Part shown: positions 9,143 to 30,301 of the stretch, in pieces
How positions within the stretch are numbered: the first letter of the stretch is position 1
How the letters are laid out: every line of letters begins with the position of its first letter
NCBI GenBank assembly: GCA_030704615.1
Contig: CM060733.1
Coordinates: 68,076,001-68,140,000, forward strand
Direction: 5' to 3'
DNA length: 64,000 nucleotides
From: Takakia lepidozioides
Lineage: Eukaryota > Plantae > Bryophyta
Made by a program: the position numbers and the translations under genes
Notes under the pieces: generated by a model
What the model was told of the DNA's origin: nothing
The model's database searches: none
Seen by the model: the letters and a program-made list of their open reading frames with translations, nothing else

Positions 9143-10324
9143 TTCGGGTTGAGGGTTGACAAAAAGTGTCAAAACAAATGTAGCAGTACAACGCGGATGC
9201 ACCAAGTGCAAGATAAACACAATCCGTGCAAACAAGTTTTTAGGAGGGCCAGTTATGCACCCCTGGAAAAATTTCAGATCCTGTGAATCAAACCTAAAAG
9301 GAGAGATCCTGAGAGACAGAAAACTAGAATAGAAATATGCGAGGTATCATGAAATGCAACTGCAAACCTATGCAAGAGGCAAAAGTGCGTATAAGAACTA
9401 TTTCACTGGATGCACAGGAGAATAGAACCCTATCTCTATTTTGCAAGAGAATAGACACACTAGGAACAACTTAGATGCAGATCTCACATGCGCTACTCGA
9501 GAGGGAGTTTATGGCATGCACTATCGTATAGACACAGAGCACATAACAATGCAATGATCTAAAGCAGGGGATACAAACGCATCTTAAACTCAAAAACTTC
9601 GAAAAACTCAACAACTTCAAAGGGTGAGACCCCGAGGCAAGATCATGCAAAGTAGTGAAGCCAAATCTTTATAAACCCCAGACTAGTTTCGCTCAACACG
9701 TGAGCTCATCAGTGGGAAAGAAAAGGAATGAGATACAAAACCCACCCCCCGCTTATATACTACTAGGAGTGAATTGCCTCGTGTGGACAATCTTCCAGTG
9801 GATGTCTCATGAGGAGAAAAACCATCCAACAGATGCCTCGTACGGAGAAAATTGTCCAAAAAGTCTCAGTGGGAGAAAGTCATCCAGTGGATGAAAACAA
9901 GTTCTCGACTACAACTAACTCCGTGGGTTTAGGGTTGAGGGTTTAGGGTCTACAAAAGATCGGAACTATAAATGTAGCAGTACAACAAATTTGAACCGTG
10001 AATGCACCGGGTGTAATAGTAACACAGTGCAGACTAAAAAGTTTTTAGGAGGGCCGATTATGCTCCGAAAAAAACTTCAAGATATCTATAGAAAAACTCA
10101 AAGAGATGATTCTGAAGACACAAAAGTAGGATAAGAGTGATGTTGATATGTTCTGAAGTGCAATTGCAAAGACATGCAAATGACTAAAGTGTATGACTGA
10201 GACTGTTTCACCGTAAATACAAGATAGCGGAAACCTATCTCTTCTAGAAGAGAAAACACACGCTAGAGAACAAACCTAGCAGCAAAGGCAAGACTAGATA
10301 GACAGTCTAAACAATGCAACTGTA
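9143..10324 (-). mobile_element. Two 3'-terminal units of a Penelope-like retroelement, each joined via a telomere-like repeat
   Basis: Homologous to the sequence 3' of the PLE RT at 16218-16750; 9952-10324 is near-identical to 16218-16593. Junction motifs GGGTTGAGGGTT (9146) and GGGTTTAGGGTTGAGGGTTTAGGGT (9925-9949). Confidence 0.8.
9677..9716 (-). ncRNA. Minimal type I hammerhead ribozyme (copy 1, GUC site)
   Basis: Minus strand reads CCCA-CUGAUGA-GCUCA(CGUGU)UGAGC-GAAACUAGUC^UGGG: full catalytic core, 5-bp stem II, palindromic ACUAGU stem III, 4-bp stem I. Confidence 0.9.
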
Positions 10325-10449
10325 AGGGAGGGCCGGGACGGTCGAGGGTCGCGGCCGGCTGGAGACCCTCAACCAAGTCCGCAGGTTTCGCCCCTCAACG
10401 GCTTCCACGCCGCGACCCTCGACCGTCCGCCAACCGCACTTCCGCCCTC
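10325..10449. mobile_element. ~125-bp GC-rich fold-back insertion (MITE-like)
   Basis: GACGGTCGAGGGTCGCGG ... CCGCGACCCTCGACCGTC perfect 18-bp inverted arms. A related GTCGAGGGTC motif occurs at 7190-7271. Confidence 0.55.
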
Positions 10450-10450
10450 A

Positions 10451-10501
10451 TAGGGTTTAGAGGGTTTAGAATTCACAAGTTTAGGGTTTAGGGTTCAGGG
10501 T
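10451..10501 (+). repeat. Degenerate interstitial telomere-like (TTTAGGG) tract
   Basis: TAGGGTTTAGAGGGTTTAG...TTTAGGGTTTAGGGTTCAGGGT. Confidence 0.75.
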
Positions 10502-11157
10502 GGTCAACAAAGGCTTGCAAAGGTAACAAAAAGTAGGAAAAATACTGAAAAACGACACATTAAATTTTAAGGGGGGCTGGTTTGGAGGTTTACTATTTCA
10601 TGACCAGAAACCATGAGCCATGAGCCATGAGCTGCATGAGTAAGACACGCGGTTTTCATGAGCGGACTCCTCCAAATTTGGAAATGCGGCAGATTAAAAA
10701 AGTATTAAAAAATAGTTTTTTAATTTGACCTTGCCGTTTTTGGAAATTCCAGATCCTGTAATGCGGCGAAGATATGTCGTGTGTAACAACTCCGCTCATG
10801 GTTTTTTAGATCCGCTCATGGAAATGAGTGACTGTACAACGAGAAATCCAATATACCACGACAAAAGGACGTCACATACTGGCATGTATAGAGTATTCCA
10901 TGGTTTTACATGCCTTAACATTGGAATGAAGCTGACCCTTCTGTCGCGATTGAACCAATAGAGTCTGTACCAATAGAGTCTGCAGTACTTCACAATTCTG
11001 TCATCTTCGGGTATTTGGCGGGAAAGGTTTGTAACTCAACTGGGAAATGCGGTGCCGCATTACGGTTCGTACGTGTGAAATTTCTGGGGGGTTTGGTGTT
11101 GGCGACGGTCGGCTCCTTGAAAACTGGGTGCGACTATCTTGTTATGACGAAGGCCAC

Positions 11158-11800
11158 AAATTTGGCGCCGTTTTTCCATCCGGGGGTGTTCTCTGTCGGC
11201 CAGGTGTCGGCCTCTTCCCCCGAGACGACTTCATCCGGGCGGCCTCGGTTGGAAATTCGGCGCCGTTTTTCCATCCGAGGGATAATCTATGTCGGCCAGG
11301 TGACCGCCTCTCCCCCTGAGACAACTTCATCCGACCGGCCCCGGATGGAAATTCGGCGCCGGTTTTCCATCCGGGGGATGTTCTCTATCGGCGTGGCCTC
11401 TCCCCCCGAGACGACTTCATCCGGGCGGCCTCGGATGGAAATTCGGCGCCGTTTTTCCATCCGGGGGATGTTTTCTGTCGGCCAGGTGTCGGCCTCTCCT
11501 CCCGAGACGACTTCATCCGGGCGGCCTCGGATGGAAATTCGGCGTCGTTTTTCCATCCGGGGGATGTTCTCTGTCGGCTAGGTGTCGGCCTCTCCCACCG
11601 AGACGACTTCATCTGGGCGGCCTCGGATGGAAATTTGGCGTCGTTTTTCCATCCGGGGGATGTTCTCTGTCCAAGTGTCGGCCTCTCCCCCCGAGACGAC
11701 TTTATCTGGGCGGCCTCGGATGGAAATTCGGCGCCGTTTTTCCATCCGAGGGATAATCTATGTCGGCCAGGTGACCGCCTCTCCCCCGGAGATGACTTCA
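11158..11800 (+). repeat. Tandem array of ~6.5 units (90-96 bp), each containing a GGCGCC-centred hairpin
   Basis: Unit core CCTCGGATGGAAA-TTCGGCGCCGTT-TTTCCATCCGAGG. Core spacings 96, 90, 96, 96 and 93 bp. Confidence 0.92.
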
Positions 11801-13043
11801 CAGTGGGGCTTGGGGCCGGACAGGCAGGAAATGCTGATGCGGACTGCCTCCAGATCGAAGAATCCTCGGAAGTGGGTGGCAGCCTTGCGAGAGGGCCTTC
11901 GGGACACGCCATTGCTTCGAAGAGGCCAACACTTGGAAGGAGATGTTCACACCCGTCCAGTGAGACGAAGATTTGACGAGGCACTTGATGGAGAAGAGGA
12001 TTCATGGCGAGCTGACAAGAATATTCGCACGCTCCCTCGTGGTCCCGTGATGTTGCCCGAAGAGGTCTCGTCGAGCACCGCAAGTCCTACACGTTCAAGA
12101 TCGCCATCTCCTTTGAGCACATGGCACGTGCCCGAGGAACATAACGAGCCATCTGTAGTAACGCAGTACAACATACCCATTGTGGAGACAAGAGTGTCAG
12201 AGTCACAGTGGAGAATTGGAAGGACATTGCCGGCATTTCGAGGGAAGTGCTGCGCCATCCGGGTGGATACGAGAGCACGCTGTGGTGAGATGATTCGGAG
12301 GAACCCTCACGGTGCTGTACCTGCACCTTGTTTCAACGGCAGATTTTTGACTCCCACATTTGCTCACGCCACAATGCAGACGTTTTGGTTCTGTAGGCAC
12401 GACATAATGACTTGTGTATTTGGCAAGCCCAAGTATGGGATTTAGGGAATGCCGGAGCCTCCGGGCGTCTGGCCTGTTTGCACCGGGTTGCAAGCTCTCT
12501 CAGAATGAGGCGGATGCTCTTTCTGCAGCAGGATATTGAATGGTGCAACGTACAGACGTCCCGGCCCACGCATTTCCATTTCCTCAGACCCAGCCATTGC
12601 AGACTGCTCGGTCCAGTAGAGACGGATTGGACAATTCTGCACATCCCACAATGCGATTCGGAAGAGTGAAGAGACGACACCCTCCCAACAAGTTGAATGA
12701 AATTCGGATTGTCAATGCTTTTGGGATGGCTTGTACTATTCAGAGCTCCGTGGACGTACCCCCACCCGGCCTTGGGCGTGTTTATCGGATGGCAACGGCC
12801 GGCTCAGCTGTACGCGACGACGTATACACAATTACGATTGGAGTGGAACCGACTTGCAATTGTACGGACTTCTCGTTGATGGAAGCAAAGAAAGGTTCAA
12901 AGTATTATCCGTGCAAACATCTGTATTACATTTACCTGAAGAGGTTGAGGATGAACTTGACTATTGATGACTTTATTCATGCACCAGCGTTGAGCGTGAA
13001 CGAGCTGCACAAACTCCTCCGCCGGGATTCCAGAAATCATTGA
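11801..13043 (+). pseudogene. C-terminal part of a MULE-like transposase with SWIM zinc finger
   Basis: Y.ITIG..PTCNCTDF...YYPCKHLYYIY is a SWIM CxC-xn-CxH finger. Stop at 12443 and a frameshift upstream of the finger. Confidence 0.8.
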
Positions 13044-14218
13044 TGGGGCAAAAGGAATCCACCATATGGATATTTTCAATTGCATTTTGATGCATTAGAT
13101 TTTGTTTTGCAGTGTAATGAAATGCACCCCAAAACTCCTGGAATGAGACAGACAATATTAAAGTAATATCTTTTAAACACTATGGACTGCTGGATATCCG
13201 TTGACGTCTAGTGGCAATTCCATGTCGAAACAAAATCAATACTAAGATGGCGGCAGGAAAAATTTGAAAATCTTCCAGAAAACTGAGTTCCAACAGTAGC
13301 AGTTGTGGGGGCCATTTCTGGAAAAATGGCGCCGAATTTCCCTATTTTGGGCCGAAAACTGGCTAAGTCCCAACATGCACGGGAACGATGTCTGGAAAAA
13401 TGGCGTTGAATTTCCACTTACATGGCCCAGAACTGCCCAACATTTGTGCAATCCCCGGCACCATGTACCAAAATTCGACGCCACATTTCCAAATTTTGGG
13501 CTTACACACCTGCCGTGTTGGGACCTATAGCCGCAAAATTCGGCACCATTTTTCGCCGAAGACACTTATTACCGCGAAATACGTCACAGATTTCTCCGGT
13601 TGCGGAACCTATTACCGCGAAATTCGGCGCCATTTTTGCAAATGTCGCTCGGAATTCGCATGAGCGAAAGACGAAATATCATGAGCATGGCTCTCAAAAC
13701 TACAATTTTTCCTTCAAACAATGAATATTATATTGGTTTTTTCTGACACATTCCATTAAATTAATGTTTTTAATGTTTTTTTAATTTCCGGAATTTGTAC
13801 TTCTGCTCATGAAAACCGATTGTATTGTTACCATGCTCGTGAAATAGCTAACCTCTTCCCTCGCTGTACTTGTTCGCTATCGGTCTCTTGCGCAAGTGTG
13901 CACTGCAGCCCTATAGTTCATTACTGCATGTTAGCCACACCTTACCGTGGGCCCAGGATATGTAGATTCTTGGCACCTTGACTTCAGAATTTTTTGCTTG
14001 ATTATGACCTGTTGTTCTACGAGCCCACATACTCATGCGGGTATGCTTTAGGACCGTGTAGGTGAGATTCTTCCGGAGCTATTAGGGTTTTGTGCTTAAA
14101 TGTGTTTTGCTAGCTCTTTGAATGTCCAAGTTTTCCAGACTTAAAGGACAATTATTTTCTTAAGGTTGATCAGATTGCGGCAGATGAGGGCAGGTTTAAA
14201 GGTGTATTCCCAGTCTAT

Positions 14219-14259
14219 CCCCAAACTAGTTTCGCTCAGCAGGTGAGCTCATCAGTGGG
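14219..14259 (-). ncRNA. Minimal type I hammerhead ribozyme (copy 2, GUU site)
   Basis: CCCA-CUGAUGA-GCUCA(CCUGC)UGAGC-GAAACUAGUU^UGGG. Confidence 0.85.
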
Positions 14260-14558
14260 AAAGAGAAGGAAAAAAGATACAATGTGCACCCGTCTGCACC
14301 CAGCTTATATACTGCTGAAAGTGAACTTGTCTCGGGGGGGAAGAAAATATCTAATGGATGGAAAACATCCAAAATTGTCTCGGCTAGAGAGATCATCCAA
14401 CACATGAAAACTTAAGATGAAAAACATCCAAAGTTTTCTCGGTAGGAGAGAAATATCCAACGCATGAAATTCTAGATGAAAAACATCATAATGTTCTCTC
14501 TAAAATGGATAATCATCCAGACTAGAAGCTAACTGCATGTCTCAAATACAACTAGCAT

Positions 14559-15480
14559 CTAGATTTGTAACTTAGCACGAACTAGATAGGAACGCAAGTT
14601 CCGTGCCCTCTTCCAACATACCATAGGTCTGTCAAAGGACGCTAACTGCGGAACTTTCAAAAAGCCCTCATGAAGTTTAGGATTTAGGACTCCCCCAAAG
14701 CTTAGAGCTTGAGTATAATGCGAATGCTCAAGTTTCAGAACCAAGGGGGCCCGCTTGCCCGTCAACTTACGAATGGACTCTGAAATCAACAGTGTAGCAC
14801 GCTGTGCATAATCACAAAGCATAAAACACTCCAAGATAAAATACTTTGGATAGCCTCGAGCACGCAATCGCTCATAGAACAGTTGCCTAATCTCAGAAAA
14901 ACCTGCACGTGTGCTCTCCCTCAAAGTGTAACGTCGTAATTCGCCCATGATGAATGCTCGTTTTTGGTGTCGTGGATGACACGAGGTCCATGGCAAATAC
15001 TGGTATCTGTTGAGTGTCTTTTGATGTCATCTCGAAGATAAAATCCCATGGTTGACAAAATCAACTCCCTTGAAGAACTGAATATCAAGAATGTCAACCG
15101 TAGACTCAGAGATTACCCTTTGAATCCGAATTGTGGGACTAAGAGAGTTGTATCCATTGAGCCAAGCCTCCAAACTTGCCTGAGATCCTGCCCAAATTCC
15201 AAATCCATCATCAATGTATCTCTTGTAGTATAGAGGCCACATACCTCCTCCAGCACCAGCCAACTCTTTTTCTAAGCTACAAAGAAAGAGACAAGCATAA
15301 ACAACAGCAAAGTTGCTACCCATTGCCGTGCCTCGGATCTGATGCCAAAAGCTTGAGCCAAATTGAAGATAGTTATTCTCCAACACCGTGCGAGAAAGAC
15401 TCACGACGAATCTTTCAAACCGAGGTGACTTGAACTTGCCGACAATCATCTCCTTCAATCGTTGAAGCCCGTCCCCAGTA
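14559..15480 (-). pseudogene. Penelope-like element reverse transcriptase, 5'-truncated, no C-terminal GIY-YIG
   Basis: QIRGTAMGSNFAVVYACLF, YKRYIDDG and LDI motifs, then YLPWTSCHP..K..FI.GEL.RY...L.ARGYP, ending LRSYLVRAKLQI*. One internal stop at 15027. Confidence 0.9.
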
Positions 15481-16217
15481 GGGTTTAGGGTTTATAAAAG
15501 AGTGGAGACAAATGTAGCAGTGCAACAGGATGCGGACCGCGAATGCACCGGGTGCAATAAGAACACAATCCGAACCAAAAAGTTTTTAGGGGAGGCCGAA
15601 TATGGGCGCCTTGAAAAAACTTGTAGATATCTAGATCCTGGGAATCAAAACTAATAGCGTTGATCCAGAGAGACAGAAAGCTAGAAAAGAAGTGATGTTG
15701 AGATGTTCTAAGATGCAACTGCAAAGATATGCAAAGAGACAAATATATGTGATTGAAACTATTTCACTGAGATGACAGGAGAATAGTACCCTATCTCTTT
15801 TGCTAGAGAATAGACACAGTAGAGAACGACTTAGATGCTCATCTAACATGCAACACTCGAGAAGGAGTTTAAAGCATGCAATAGATGATAGCAAACCTAA
15901 GGCTCAACAGCATAGAAGAAACATTGAGACAAGAACCCTTAGATGTAGAATAGTAGCCAATCTTTATAAAGTCCCACACTAGTTTCGCTCAACAAATGAG
16001 CTCATCAGTGGGAGAGAAATGAAATGAGGTACACATAGCCTCACCCCCAGCTTATATACTGCTGTAAGGGGTTGTCTCAAATGGGCACAAGACCAAAATA
16101 GGTAAAAGAAAGTTATTTCTATGTCTGGAATAGGAATTTTTATTTTTTTTTGTGTCTAAGAAATAACTTTATGCCTAAATAGAAAAAAGATAACTTTTAA
16201 AGCCTAAAACTGGCTTG
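15478..16217 (-). mobile_element. PLE 3'-terminal unit with a telomeric tail
   Basis: TATA, hammerhead and ~480-nt tail ending AAACCCUAAACCCUA (plus strand TAGGGTTTAGGGTTT, 15479-15493). Confidence 0.8.
15973..16012 (-). ncRNA. Minimal hammerhead ribozyme (copy 3; GUG triplet, probably inactive)
   Basis: CCCA-CUGAUGA-GCUCA(UUUGU)UGAGC-GAAACUAGUG-UGGG. The triplet violates the NUH rule. Confidence 0.75.
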
Positions 16218-17310
16218 ACAAAAGATTGGAACTATAAATGTAGCAGTACAACAAATGTGAACCGCGAATGCACCAGGTGCAATAGTAGCACAGTGCAGAC
16301 TCAAATTTTTTTAGGGGGAGCCAGTTATGCTCTGAAAAAACCTTCAAGATATCTATAGAAAAACTCAAAGAGATGATTCTGAAGACACAAAGGTAGGATA
16401 TGAGTGATGTTGATATGTTCTAAAGTGCAATTGCAAAGACATGCAAATGACTAAAGTGTATGACTGAGACTGTTTCACCGTAAATACAGGATAACAGAAA
16501 CCTATCTCTTATGGAAGAGAAAACACACACTAGAGAACAAACCTAGCAGCAAATGCAAGACTAGACAGACAGTCTAAACAATGCAACTGTAAGGTACAAC
16601 AACACAAATGAGAAAGTGAGACAAAACACACTTATATGCAGAATACTAGCAAATCTTTATAAGCTCCAGACTAGTTTCGCTCAAAATCTGAGCTCTTCAG
16701 TGGGAAGAAAAAAATGGAGTGAAGTACAATGAGTCTCACCGCCAGCTTATATATTGTCGAATAAGTGTTGTCTAAAAAAAAGCATAAGATAAAAAGACAA
16801 CTAAAAACATCTTTTAGCCGATAAAATGTTTTTTTCTAAAAAAAAAAAAAATTCTTTTTTCCAACTTATGCCTGTAAGCCAAGAATATCTCCTTCAATAT
16901 AATTGACTCTATTGTAACTTAGCACGAACTAAATATAAACGTATATTTCTCGTTTTTTTTCCAACAAACCATAGGTTTGTCAAAAGATGCTAACTGCGGA
17001 ACTTTAAAAAGATGCTCATGCAGTTTAGGGTTTAGGACTCCCCCAAGGTTTAGAGCTTGAGTATATCGAGAATGCTCAAGTTTCAGAACCAAGGGGGTCC
17101 GTTTACCCATCAACTTACGAGTGGATTCTGAAGCTAACAGTGTAGCCCGTTGTGCATAGTCACATAGTCTAAAACACTCTAAGATAAAAAACTTCGGATA
17201 GCCTCGAGCACGCAATCGTTCATAGAACAGTCGTCGATCTCTGAAAAACCTGCACATGTGCTTTCTCTCAAAGTGTATCGCCGTAGCTCACCAATGACGA
17301 ATGCTCGTTT
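16218..17310 (-). mobile_element. Second 5'-truncated PLE: RT C-terminus, 3' UTR, hammerhead and tail
   Basis: 16909-17310 encodes a paralogue of the 14559-14970 RT C-terminus (LFYERLRARGYPK.FILECF..CDYAQR...RAKLQ*). Confidence 0.88.
16665..16704 (-). ncRNA. Minimal type I hammerhead ribozyme (copy 4, GUC site)
   Basis: CCCA-CUGAAGA-GCUCA(GAUUU)UGAGC-GAAACUAGUC^UGGA. The N7 position tolerates A. Confidence 0.85.
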
Positions 17311-17548
17311 TATAAAAGAGTGGAGACAAATGTAGCAGTGCAACAGGATGCAGACCGCGAATGCATCAGGTGCAATAAGAACACAATCCGAACTAAAAAG
17401 TTTTTAGGGGGGGCCGGGTATGGGCGCCTTGAAAAAACTTGTAGATATCTAGATCCTGGGAATCAAAACTAATAGCGTTGATCCAGAGAGACAGAAAGCT
17501 AGAAAAGAAGTGATGTTGAGATGTTCTAAGATGCAACTGCAAAGATAT
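17308..17548 (-). mobile_element. Short PLE 3'-tail copy
   Basis: Near-identical to 15491-15729. Confidence 0.85.
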
Positions 17549-28062: not shown

Positions 28063-28539
28063 AGCAGTTCCACCAGGTTGATGTCCAGAAGGACAGGTAC
28101 ATCTTTGAGTTGTAGTAAACCATCACAGTACGGGACAATGAACTTTCTGTGAGTGAAAAAGCTTGGAAAGAAGCCAACAATCTGTCAGCTACCTATGCAG
28201 CTCTGGTTGAGCTTCATGCGAAGCGCATGGAGAGTTTACAACAGCAGTTGGAAGCATACCGGTTCAAGGAGGAGCAGGATCTCCGTGGTGTTACACAAGA
28301 CTTGGTGGATAATCATCTTTTGCAAGAGTGGGTAACACAAGGGCCAGCGGAAGGGAAAGCACCAAGAAAGCTCACCCAAGACGAGATGAATGATTATCTT
28401 CTTCTCCAACATCCGCATCTGATGGAGCCTCATCGTATAGGATCCGGGATGCATTGTCCGGGGCGTCATCATTCTCTTGTACCCTCTCTATCCAACCTCG
28501 GCCAACATCAGCGTCATCATGACCAGTCTCTTCCTCCTC

Positions 28540-29030
28540 TGCTTCCTCCCTCCTTCTTTGACATCCAAGTGCACTTGGTAGTGCACTTAGTGGAAGAGGC
28601 TTCAATTGCCGGCCCCGTTCATTCTCGGTGGATATACTACCTTGAGCGATACATGAAGACTTTGAAAGCACATGTAAGACAAATGGCACACCCGGAGGGC
28701 AGCATGGCGGAGGGGTATACATTGCAAGAGGCTATGTTCTACTGCATAGAGTACTTGGCAATGGTAGATAAGGAAGCCCTTCCGATGTGGAAGGAAGATA
28801 AGGATGTACGAACCAATGACATCGTTTTGCCCAAAAATTCAAAGAGGGTAAAATTACCCATCATGGTGATTAACCAAGTGCATGAGTTCATACTGAAGAA
28901 CACCCCATCCATACATAAGTGGGCGGCAAGATACAATAACCTTGTTCAGCAACGACAGGAGGAGACGGTTGCGTGGAGGCGGAACCATGCAAGGGCGACT
29001 ACACGCGCTCCGCGAACAAGGGCCGTCGTA
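28540..29030 (+). pseudogene. CACTA/En-Spm transposase fragment (DUF4218-like)
   Basis: LPPSFFDIQVHLVVHLVEEA..AGPVHSRW.Y..ERYMKTLK.HVRQ.AHPEGSMAEGY. Confidence 0.88.
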
Positions 29031-30301
29031 GGAATGTGTCTTCACAAGATTTGCCCATGGAATTGCAGCCTCTAAGTTCATTCCGCCTTTTTTCCAAGTC
29101 CGCCAACCGTCCTGATGTTGCCATGCTATGCGGAGGCTGCAGCCAGAGAGTTTAGTCTGCAGACATCTCTCTCTCCTCTGCTTTGCCACCGTAAGGCAAA
29201 TGTGCACAACAGAACTAGGATCTATATAGATAGTAGTGCTTCAGAATCGGATGCAAACTCCAGTTCCAGTGGATAGTCTTATTCCAAATAACTCACCGTG
29301 TTTCAAAATATCTATCAATGAGTCTGTGACGGGGTTGTTTGCTCTTTGTCCAGTGTCTGCCTCTCTTTCAGTTCTTCTCTCCATAACTCTTTTCATCCAT
29401 ATAACTCCTTACAACCACATTCACAACTCCATTCATTCATTTTTCATGTGCCGATTTTTCATTTTTCATTCCTTCATCCAGTCTTTGTCCATCCTCTCAT
29501 CCATTGTTCATCCATCGCTCTGCATTATGTCCATCCAAAATTCATCTTGCATTCATCCATTCATCAATTATTCATCCACCATTCATCCAATATCCAACAA
29601 ACATTCATCCAACACTCATCCAAGTACGCACAATATGTATTCTAGAAAATTCTGCACCACTAGGTTGTATGCACTCAGTCCCGCGGAAATAGGTCTCCCG
29701 GGGCTTCTTCATCCGCGGTTGTAGGCCCATGCACCCTATTACGTGAGCATCTTCCCGCTCATGGATTAGCATCTTCCCGCTCACAGACTAGCATTCGCCA
29801 CCGGGGCACCATTTGTCCCTCTTGCACTGACTACACCATTCTCTAGAGGCAGCTGTGGGTGCACTTGATCTTGTTCCTTGTTATCCTCACGCACAACTTC
29901 TAAACCAGGAGTGTTGATAGGACAGTCATTGGCTTGTGGGCATGTCACACCTCTGTCATCTTCACTGACTAACCCTGCACTGGAGTTCATTGCTCCACAG
30001 CTTGCACTGTGTTCAACAGTTTCTTGAGAAACCCCCCCACTTCTTGAGCAGCTACCCCCTGTGGTCCCGCATGCAGAGAATAAGATGTTTCACCTTCAGC
30101 ATCATTTACCGATCATTGAAGCTTCCTGGACTATATGATGGCAAAGTCATGATGCGATGGATGTACTTCTTGCATTCATGGGGCATGCATGATGGATGCG
30201 TGCAATAAGGTAGTGGTATCTAGAGGTGTGCATTTAACCAGTGTGCACTGCTCAAAGGGTGCAGTGTCTCAAAAATTACATGAGCAGAATAGCAAATGAA
30301 G

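Follow-up and report, generated by a model that had tools for sequence, protein, structure and literature searches.

Why should one stretch of moss DNA carry four almost identical hammerhead motifs, and what would such ribozymes do for the element that holds them? The stretch in question, called the window throughout, comprises 64,000 nucleotides (nt) of the Takakia lepidozioides genome (contig CM060733.1, positions 68,076,001 to 68,140,000). The original prediction, made from the letters of the window, placed four minimal hammerhead ribozymes of a Penelope-like element (PLE) on its minus strand and proposed that tandem units could supply the partner ribozyme. The best overall explanation, which we regard as probable, is that these are hammerheads of telomere-primed, endonuclease-less PLEs and that each belongs to a 3' module acting like a pseudo-long-terminal-repeat (pseudo-LTR). 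The identity of the motifs and of their host is held with high confidence, and the mechanism with moderate confidence.

When both strands of the window were searched with the predicted consensus as the pattern and up to three mismatches allowed, exactly four matches were found, each with zero mismatches and all on the minus strand, compared to none in 100 dinucleotide-preserving shuffles (chance expectation 0). The full motifs, including the CCCA and UGGG/UGGA arms, are as follows, the unit letters being those of the retroelement stack described below.

9716-9677 (pattern match 9712-9682), minus strand: hammerhead of unit F, intact core, loop II CGUGU, position 17 C (triplet GUC), 4-base-pair (bp) helix I
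14259-14220 (pattern match 14255-14225), minus strand: hammerhead of unit D, loop II CCUGC, position 17 U (triplet GUU)
16012-15973 (pattern match 16008-15978), minus strand: hammerhead of unit C, loop II UUUGU, position 17 G (triplet GUG), predicted uncleavable
16704-16665 (pattern match 16700-16670), minus strand: hammerhead of unit B, CUGAAGA core, loop II GAUUU, position 17 C (triplet GUC), helix I cut to 3 bp by UGGA

The hammerhead catalytic core consists of C3 U4 G5 A6 N7 G8 A9 together with G12 A13 A14, and a cleavable position 17 is A, C or U, G17 being inactive according to established mutational knowledge. In all four copies the core CUGA(U/A)GA ... GAAA was complete, with no core substitution, and the A15.1-U16.1 pair was present; position 17 was permissive in three of them (C, U and C). 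By these features the ribozymes of units F, B and D look intact, with helix I of B weakened, and that of unit C should be dead because of its G17. When the four copies were aligned with 85-89 nt of flank on each side, 32 of the 35 ribozyme columns outside loop II were invariant and the mean pairwise identity was 95%, compared to 43% in loop II, which is distinct in every copy, 61% in the 5' flank and 48% in the 3' flank (65% without copy D). The binomial probability of this invariance at the rate of the 5' flank was 8e-12. Helix II was found to be 5 bp in each copy and invariant within the window, and helix I (4 bp, or 3 bp in unit B) is open, as in type I hammerheads.

These findings confirm the positions, the near-invariant core and stems, the four different loops II, the triplets and the diverged flanks (48-61% identity compared to 95%) of the original prediction. 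They also indicate that the four motifs are, by sequence, type I hammerhead ribozymes, cleavage itself being predicted. The selection on RNA structure that had been deduced from them applies to the master elements and not to the window copies, which are dead.

The host element is best seen in unit D, where a reverse transcriptase (RT) frame of 308 codons (15488-14563, its first codons inside a telomere-type repeat, with one in-frame TGA at 15032-15030) contains the motifs GTAMGS and YIDDG. The frame was searched as two pieces on either side of the in-frame stop, without profiles and against a representative protein library. The first piece matched 5235 proteins at an E-value of <=0.001, the best being a 580-amino-acid (aa) Selaginella moellendorffii protein (P0001), to whose residues 276-423 and 427-576 the two pieces were 54% and 50% identical, respectively. 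The best RT matches were found in Selaginella and Ginkgo; these matches, the TTTAGGG-type repeats of the locus and a DUF4218 domain elsewhere in the window are the grounds for calling the genome plant-type. The assignment to PLE-type RTs rests on the motifs and on Selaginella proteins whose loci carry telomere repeats and a canonical hammerhead, and it upholds the Penelope-like element in a plant-type genome that had been proposed (50-54% identity to Selaginella proteins). Pfam gave no match for ten open reading frames (ORFs) of the region or for the two RT pieces, fragments too short for RVT_1.

The unit D ORF stops two residues past an aligned LVRAKL at residue 576 of the 580 of P0001, that is, at the same end point. 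The 3' untranslated region (UTR) downstream of it consists of non-coding repeats, and nothing there codes for GIY-YIG. No Pfam match to GIY-YIG was found in the RT fragments or in any of the six longer relatives scanned, five of which were 555-658 aa long. An ORF that ends as in Selaginella and is followed by no GIY-YIG argues that the element is endonuclease-less.

A telomere-like stretch, CCTAAACCCTAAAC, which encodes L-N-P-K, was observed inside the RT gene at 17036-17023 and 14700-14680 (minus strand). Its codons are complete in unit B, differ by one base in unit D, and recur in two Selaginella loci (L001, 5615-5630; L041, 6615-6630) although the proteins are only about 50% identical. Such codon conservation hints at selection at the nucleotide level, perhaps on an internal telomere-pairing site.

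How did four ribozymes come to lie so near one another? The minus strand was read from 17700 to 8900 and its pieces were compared by BLAST. From 17548 to 9145 it was found to hold a head-to-tail chain of six 5'-truncated pieces of one retroelement family. The TATATAAGC boxes listed here are TATA boxes.

17310..17548, minus strand: unit A, tail only, 5'-truncated inside the tail, ending CTTTTATAAA and abutting unit B with no telomere repeat between
16215..17311, minus strand: unit B, 5'-truncated endonuclease-less PLE with an RT C-terminal piece, 3' UTR, hammerhead and a tail of ~450 nt
17311-16912, minus strand: RT C-terminal piece of unit B, with a frame break, 84.5% identical in nucleotides to the RT of unit D
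16753-16745, minus strand: TATATAAGC box of unit B
15491..16214, minus strand: unit C, 5'-truncated in the 3' UTR, with hammerhead and a tail of ~480 nt ending CTTTTATAAA
16058-16050, minus strand: TATATAAGC box of unit C
15479..15490, minus strand: telomere-type repeat CCCTAAACCCTA, the joint between unit C (tail end) and unit D (truncated 5' end)
14563..15478, minus strand: RT fragment of unit D, ending LVRAKLQI-stop
14202..14562, minus strand: 3' UTR of unit D, with roughly 60-nt repeats, TATA box and hammerhead
14311-14303, minus strand: TATATAAGC box of unit D
10451..10495, minus strand: telomere-type repeats in two clusters (CCCTAAA variants), at the downstream end of a 3.6-kilobase (kb) non-PLE segment
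9960..10327, minus strand: unit E, tail only, 93% identical to the tail of unit B
9925..9949, minus strand: telomere-type run ACCCTAAACCCTCAACCCTAAACCC (heptamer cluster) between units E and F
9160..9924, minus strand: unit F, 5'-truncated in the 3' UTR, with hammerhead and a tail of ~515 nt
9759-9751, minus strand: TATATAAGC box of unit F
~9159-9145, minus strand: degenerate telomere-like CCCTCAACCCGAAAC, directly after unit F

The pieces share a constant tail end (CTTTTATAAA, CTTTTGTAGA or CTTTTGTCAA), and their 5' ends vary, falling in the RT (B at 17311, D at 15478), in the 3' UTR (C at ~16214, F at ~9924) or in the tail (A at 17548, E at 10327). Unit A and the tail of unit C (15730-15491) are 97% identical, and the heptamer cluster at 15494-15479 overlaps the last TAAA of the latter. 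The homology of unit D to the other units ends at ~14220 as judged by BLAST; its tail, from 14219, is different and shorter, and the first 17 nt of it can lengthen helix I. The repeats in the stack are of the TTTAGGG type. A fixed 3' end, variable 5' truncation and C-strand repeats in sense orientation are as expected for reverse transcription from the RNA 3' end onto a G-rich telomeric overhang, and endonuclease-deficient PLEs are reported to attach to such overhangs (PMC8557442, PMC6431247). As read from its sequence, the stack is a fossil of endonuclease-less, telomere-primed PLE copies, all non-autonomous debris, and it records a former chromosome end or healed break, by now internal. The direct repeats at the locus exist because of this stacking. 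The original prediction had pointed to the pseudo-LTR setting of canonical, endonuclease-bearing PLEs, which has to be replaced: the ribozymes lie in the 3' UTRs of stacked, 5'-truncated, endonuclease-less, telomere-primed copies.

Between units D and E lies the 3.6-kb non-PLE segment of unrelated repeated DNA (14201-10500). One of its edges has a single AAACCCTAA at 14090-14082 and the other the telomere repeats at 10495-10451; it ends with CTTTGTTGACC, which loosely resembles the PLE tail end, and its ORFs gave no Pfam match. It may be another telomere-primed passenger or captured DNA. A GC-rich inverted repeat (10429-10335; 20-bp perfect arms, loop of ~50 nt) stands between the telomere repeats at 10451 and the start of unit E. 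Within the segment, a repeat array with ~96-nt spacing (11171-11860) carries in each repeat a palindrome of the type GGATGGAAAAACGGCGCCGAATTTCCATCC, with comparable palindromes, centred on GGCGCC, at 13307-13440 and 13560-13640.

Upstream of the TATA box, the 3' UTR (14500-14340 and 9900-9790, minus strand) contains two to three degenerate ~60-nt repeats, each with GAGACA and TTGGATG. A related copy in another sequencing run is without one 61-nt UTR repeat (joint 14391/14453). By their sequence these repeats may be enhancer-like or protein-binding.

Is the hammerhead a chance possession of these few copies, or a regular part of the element? A scan of metagenome contigs, in which the pattern was fixed at the core and helix II alone, gave 37 loci, and RT relatives were sought by tblastn. 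A PLE RT relative was found in seven of the 37 (L011, L013, L019, L031, L033, L037 and L038), and an eighth contig, L003, outside the 37, was found through its RT. The other 30 loci had no PLE RT, were mostly other hammerhead architectures or chance matches, and were excluded from the covariation count; two of them (L014, 5957-6010; L020, 1616-1570, minus strand) have the same helix II with a closed, stable helix III and look like monomeric hammerheads. In all eight relatives the hammerhead lay on the RT strand, and in six of them approximately 260-340 nt past the end of the RT alignment. In L003 it was found ~1.1 kb past the stop, and in L033 the sole ribozyme found was upstream of the RT. 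L003 is a near-complete 4.7-kb element with CCCTAAA repeats on both sides, a second ORF, RT, ribozyme and a 204-nt tail ending CTCTTTTACAA. In the Selaginella loci L041 and L042 the hammerhead lies 870-890 nt past the RT stop and ~175 nt before telomere repeats, with a second copy in the upstream unit of L041.

The distance from a TATA box to the downstream CUGA is 38-57 nt in every lineage examined (47-56 nt in the window, where the box is an invariant TATATAAGC), and in most lineages the box is followed after 19-29 nt by YTTGTA, the expected position of a start site. The order and spacing are thus TATA box, ~20-29 nt, YTTGTA, ~17-30 nt, hammerhead and tail, with a telomere repeat after the tail in sequences long enough to include it. 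Telomere repeats were found ~175 nt past the ribozyme in Selaginella, ~450-515 nt past it in the window and 166-1214 nt past it in the metagenome relatives. The RTs of the module-bearing lineages are only 40-55% identical. At the level of sequence, these findings show that the ribozyme is a component of a conserved 3' module and lies apart from the telomere repeats.

Two near-perfect plant upstream sequence element (USE) boxes (ATCCCACATTG) were seen in L011 (3490-3540), just upstream of a TATA-like box and hammerhead. Upstream of the window TATA boxes, the search for a USE box of the plant small nuclear RNA type gave only loose resemblances (e.g. GTCCACACGAG), and none is claimed.

Could such ribozymes act in pairs? 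In the monomer, helix III consists of 2 bp (A-U and C-G) and a 2-nt palindromic loop (ACUAGU), and as a dimer it would be 6 bp. The two central bases are adjacent, so that no pairing between them is possible inside one hairpin. The hexamer was found to be ACUAGU in the window, L011 and L019, ACGCGU in L003, ACAUGU in L013 and ACCGGU in Selaginella; that of L031, ACAUAU, is decayed from ACAUGU. The centre was self-complementary in every copy (10 aligned copies and three Selaginella copies). The centres seen, UA, GC, AU and CG, are all four Watson-Crick self-complementary dinucleotides, and the other twelve types were unseen. The chance of this pattern is roughly (1/4)^3 to (1/4)^4, modest statistics from four independent types. 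A self-complementary centre of adjacent bases matches the exact prediction of an intermolecular 6-bp helix III, and its covariation across lineages supports, from sequence comparison, pairing between two ribozyme copies in trans, in line with the palindromic ACUAGU helix to which dimeric cleavage had originally been attributed. Helix I also covaried among the relatives (CG/UA and CG/GC), and the covariation score of the whole structure was above that of all shuffles; helix II was uninformative in the relatives, being fixed by the search pattern. Cofolding of copy D gave a textbook double hammerhead with an extended intermolecular helix III, and copy D was the only one to do so. Minimum-free-energy folds of single copies recovered the hammerhead unreliably, and folding energies are weak evidence here.

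PLE hammerheads with a small palindromic helix III are thought to be selected to act as dimers and cleave poorly in vitro (PMC4209133). With regard to the proposal that tandem units supply the partner, only two of the four window hammerheads are close neighbours (16670 and 15978, 692 nt apart), the downstream one being GUG. The intact core of C could, on the model of paired copies, still cut the site of B, so that a tandem neighbour would be geometrically sound as a partner.

These observations can be joined in a tentative sequence of events. As the junctions suggest, reverse transcription of each copy would run from a fixed 3' end of the RNA (tail CTTTTRYAAA) onto a G-strand end of the TTTAGGG type, and the new end would then be capped by telomerase. 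In a stack, the module of the upstream unit would come to lie just before the downstream unit, in the manner of a pseudo-LTR (for example C module, unit D, D module). The TATA promoter of the upstream unit would start transcription ~12-25 nt before the ribozyme, which, paired to another copy by its palindromic helix III, would remove a short capped leader; it may also cut read-through multimers to unit length. The product would be an RNA with a 5'-OH that extends over tail and telomere repeats and on through the downstream unit. Such cleavage, judged from the copies, is probably inefficient and dependent on a partner, because every inserted copy came from an RNA that was uncut at its own ribozyme. 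A precedent is found in a plant retrozyme, in which an LTR promoter fires into a hammerhead, the capped 5' end is removed and the transcript is untranslatable (PMC12029980). The promoter of Drosophila Penelope is internal and TATA-less (PMC2377424). The role of hammerheads for PLEs is still called open (PMC8557442, PMC11167929).

Several results weigh against the ribozymes of this element being cut as proposed, or even being scored as hammerheads. None of the four motifs was called at the Rfam gathering thresholds; in E-value mode three of the four gave weak Hammerhead_HH9 matches (15.8-19.5 bits against a gathering score of 52). The shortfall is expected because the window variants are without the helix I and loop II features of HH9. 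With a helix I of 3-4 bp, an unconserved loop II and no evident loop-loop tertiary contact, activity at physiological Mg2+ is predicted to be low. The 5' ends of the six units all lie away from the hammerhead cut site, and all four ribozyme-bearing copies are contiguous across it; together these facts indicate that the template RNAs were uncut at their own ribozymes. Contigs from two other sequencing runs had no ends at the cut site, and they hold no strand information. In Selaginella L001, a close RT relative, no sense-strand hammerhead core was found in the 2.2-kb 3' UTR, which indicates that the ribozyme is dispensable at least for the persistence of a copy. A relaxed scan of L001 gave one chance-like antisense match within the RT gene; L041 and L042, of the same protein cluster, do carry the hammerhead. 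For an endonuclease-bearing PLE, mutating the hammerhead left in vitro insertion unaffected, and among RNA-seq reads none ended at the cut site (PMC11167929). Moreover, we infer promoter activity and a transcription start at the module from its sequence layout.

A search of sequencing runs found no RNA run with the stretch. The two runs above, whose type is guessed, share only 14100-15482 of the window, at 90-99% identity, as other copies of the family; one shared part is 14100-14201.

If the templates were uncut, the fold might serve mainly as a structural recognition element of the 3' UTR, such as a site for binding or positioning the RT, with cleavage incidental or unused. We consider this unlikely, while granting that it accounts directly for the uncut templates of all four copies. 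It also agrees with the finding that, for an endonuclease-bearing PLE, RNA that has not been processed serves as the main substrate in vitro and core mutations leave insertion unchanged (PMC11167929), and with the term '3'-terminal fold' given to the telomeric PLE hammerhead by the Arkhipova group (PMC6431247). A protein-binding hairpin, however, would need neither the full set of catalytic core nucleotides, which persists in lineages with RTs no more than 40-55% identical, nor a C, U or A at position 17, which is present in all but one decayed copy. Helix III stays palindromic, pointing to pairing between RNAs, and with 166-1214 nt between it and the 3' end the ribozyme does not qualify as a terminal fold.

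A bolder reading, and one that we think rather improbable, is that the module of TATA box, hammerhead, tail and telomere repeat is a transcription unit of its own. It would give a decapped non-coding RNA with a telomere-complementary stretch, a dedicated RT template resembling telomerase RNA. If this were true, plant-type endonuclease-less PLEs would run two RNAs, a capped mRNA and a ribozyme-processed template RNA, and the two-RNA system would have been kept since before the split from the Selaginella lineage.

Two ribozyme-bearing units in direct tandem would also suit a retrozyme-like non-coding RNA, in which cuts at 16670 and 15978 free a unit-length RNA that is ligated to a circle and copied by the PLE RT, and animal non-LTR retrozymes have been argued to stem from PLE pseudo-LTRs (bioRxiv 10.64898/2026.07.22.740005). 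This is very unlikely at the present locus, where the units, variably truncated on the 5' side, are bordered by a fixed tail end and telomere repeats and not by cut sites, the downstream ribozyme of the pair has G17, and no equal-unit array is found in the window. The Terminon-like alternative, that the ribozyme trims the RNA 3' end and so exposes telomere-complementary repeats to the G-overhang, follows the published Athena/Terminon model in which reverse-complement repeats come directly after the hammerhead (PMC6431247, PMC8557442), and it is hardly credible for an element whose repeats lie 166-1214 nt past the ribozyme, here and in all relatives, and whose inserted copies hold ORF or UTR, ribozyme and tail in one piece when a cut would part the ORF from the tail and repeats.

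Hammerheads of telomere-primed, endonuclease-less PLEs, probably within a pseudo-LTR-like 3' module, are therefore the reading retained here. Among retroelements, the endonuclease-less PLEs stand closest to telomerase, and to our knowledge nearly all that is documented of them in plants comes from Selaginella. Already known were hammerheads in PLEs, telomere-attached PLEs without an endonuclease in Selaginella, and chains of their truncated copies. The present analysis adds cross-lineage covariation for an intermolecular helix III, a conserved TATA box aimed at the ribozyme, and a long tail between the ribozyme and the telomere repeats. TATA box, palindromic helix III and long tail travel together across lineages whose RTs are 40-55% identical. 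No description of the TATA-to-ribozyme layout for PLEs was found in the searchable literature, two key papers lying outside its reach.

Elsewhere in the window, fragments of Ty3/gypsy-type RNase H and integrase and a DUF4218 domain (plant CACTA-type transposon) were found at 1661-2803 and 28149-29075, in transposon-rich DNA.

Compared with known systems, an animal-type non-LTR retrozyme was rejected as an identity for the locus, which has only one tandem pair (692 nt) and borders made of tail ends and telomere repeats. A plant LTR retrozyme was likewise rejected, since the window hammerheads are of type I with an open helix I and the units end in telomere repeats, not LTRs. Plant LTR retrozymes such as NbRZ1 (PMC12029980) resemble the proposed module in that transcription from a terminal-repeat promoter runs into a hammerhead, by which the capped 5' end is removed. 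In contrast, they have type III hammerheads, LTR, primer-binding site and polypurine tract, mobilisation by Ty3/gypsy elements and circular RNAs, none of which was seen in the window units.

The hammerheads of metazoan PLE pseudo-LTRs (PMC4209133) are, like those of the window, of type I with a very short palindromic helix III, variable outside the core and located in the terminal repeat region of a PLE. Their hosts carry an endonuclease and form pseudo-LTRs by partial tandem insertion (PMC4209133), whereas the window element has no endonuclease and its repeats arise by telomere stacking. The window hammerhead, with a 2-nt loop 3, does not follow the strict descriptor without helix III of PMC4209133, and the bulged base between positions 9 and 10.1 described there is absent from it.

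The Athena/Terminon system of bdelloid rotifers, so far as it is presented in PMC6431247 after Arkhipova et al. 2017, shares the endonuclease-less PLE RT, 5'-truncated head-to-tail chains with short telomere repeats between, a hammerhead near the 3' end and foreign DNA between units. In that account the reverse-complement repeats of Terminons come directly after the ribozyme, compared to hundreds of nt away in the window, and the giant multi-ORF units that it describes have no counterpart in the window.

The endonuclease-deficient, telomere-associated PLEs of Selaginella moellendorffii (Gladyshev and Arkhipova 2007, as cited in PMC4209133 and PMC8557442), whose hammerheads were described by Cervera and de la Pena 2014 (PMC4209133), are like the window element in several respects. 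The RT is 50-54% identical with the same end point and no endonuclease, CCCTAAA repeats flank the elements, and a type I hammerhead, its helix III a palindromic ACNNGU, stands ~57 nt past a TATA box (L041:7613), the other two Selaginella copies having variant A/T-rich boxes at the same place. A tail precedes the telomere repeats in both, ~175 nt there and longer, ~450-515 nt, in the window. The ribozymes themselves were compared through the fetched loci L041 and L042, not published sequences. The Selaginella ribozyme is canonical: its helix I is 6 bp with an internal loop, its helix II 4 bp and its loop II a conserved CAAAAA, and it scores 45.9 bits on HH9. That of the window has a helix I of 3-4 bp (4 bp where complete), a 5-bp helix II, an unconserved loop II and 15.8-19.5 bits, and in this sense deserves the term minimal given to it originally. 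These findings thus add a second, less canonical version of the ribozyme in plant-type elements, and a family that is wider than Selaginella.

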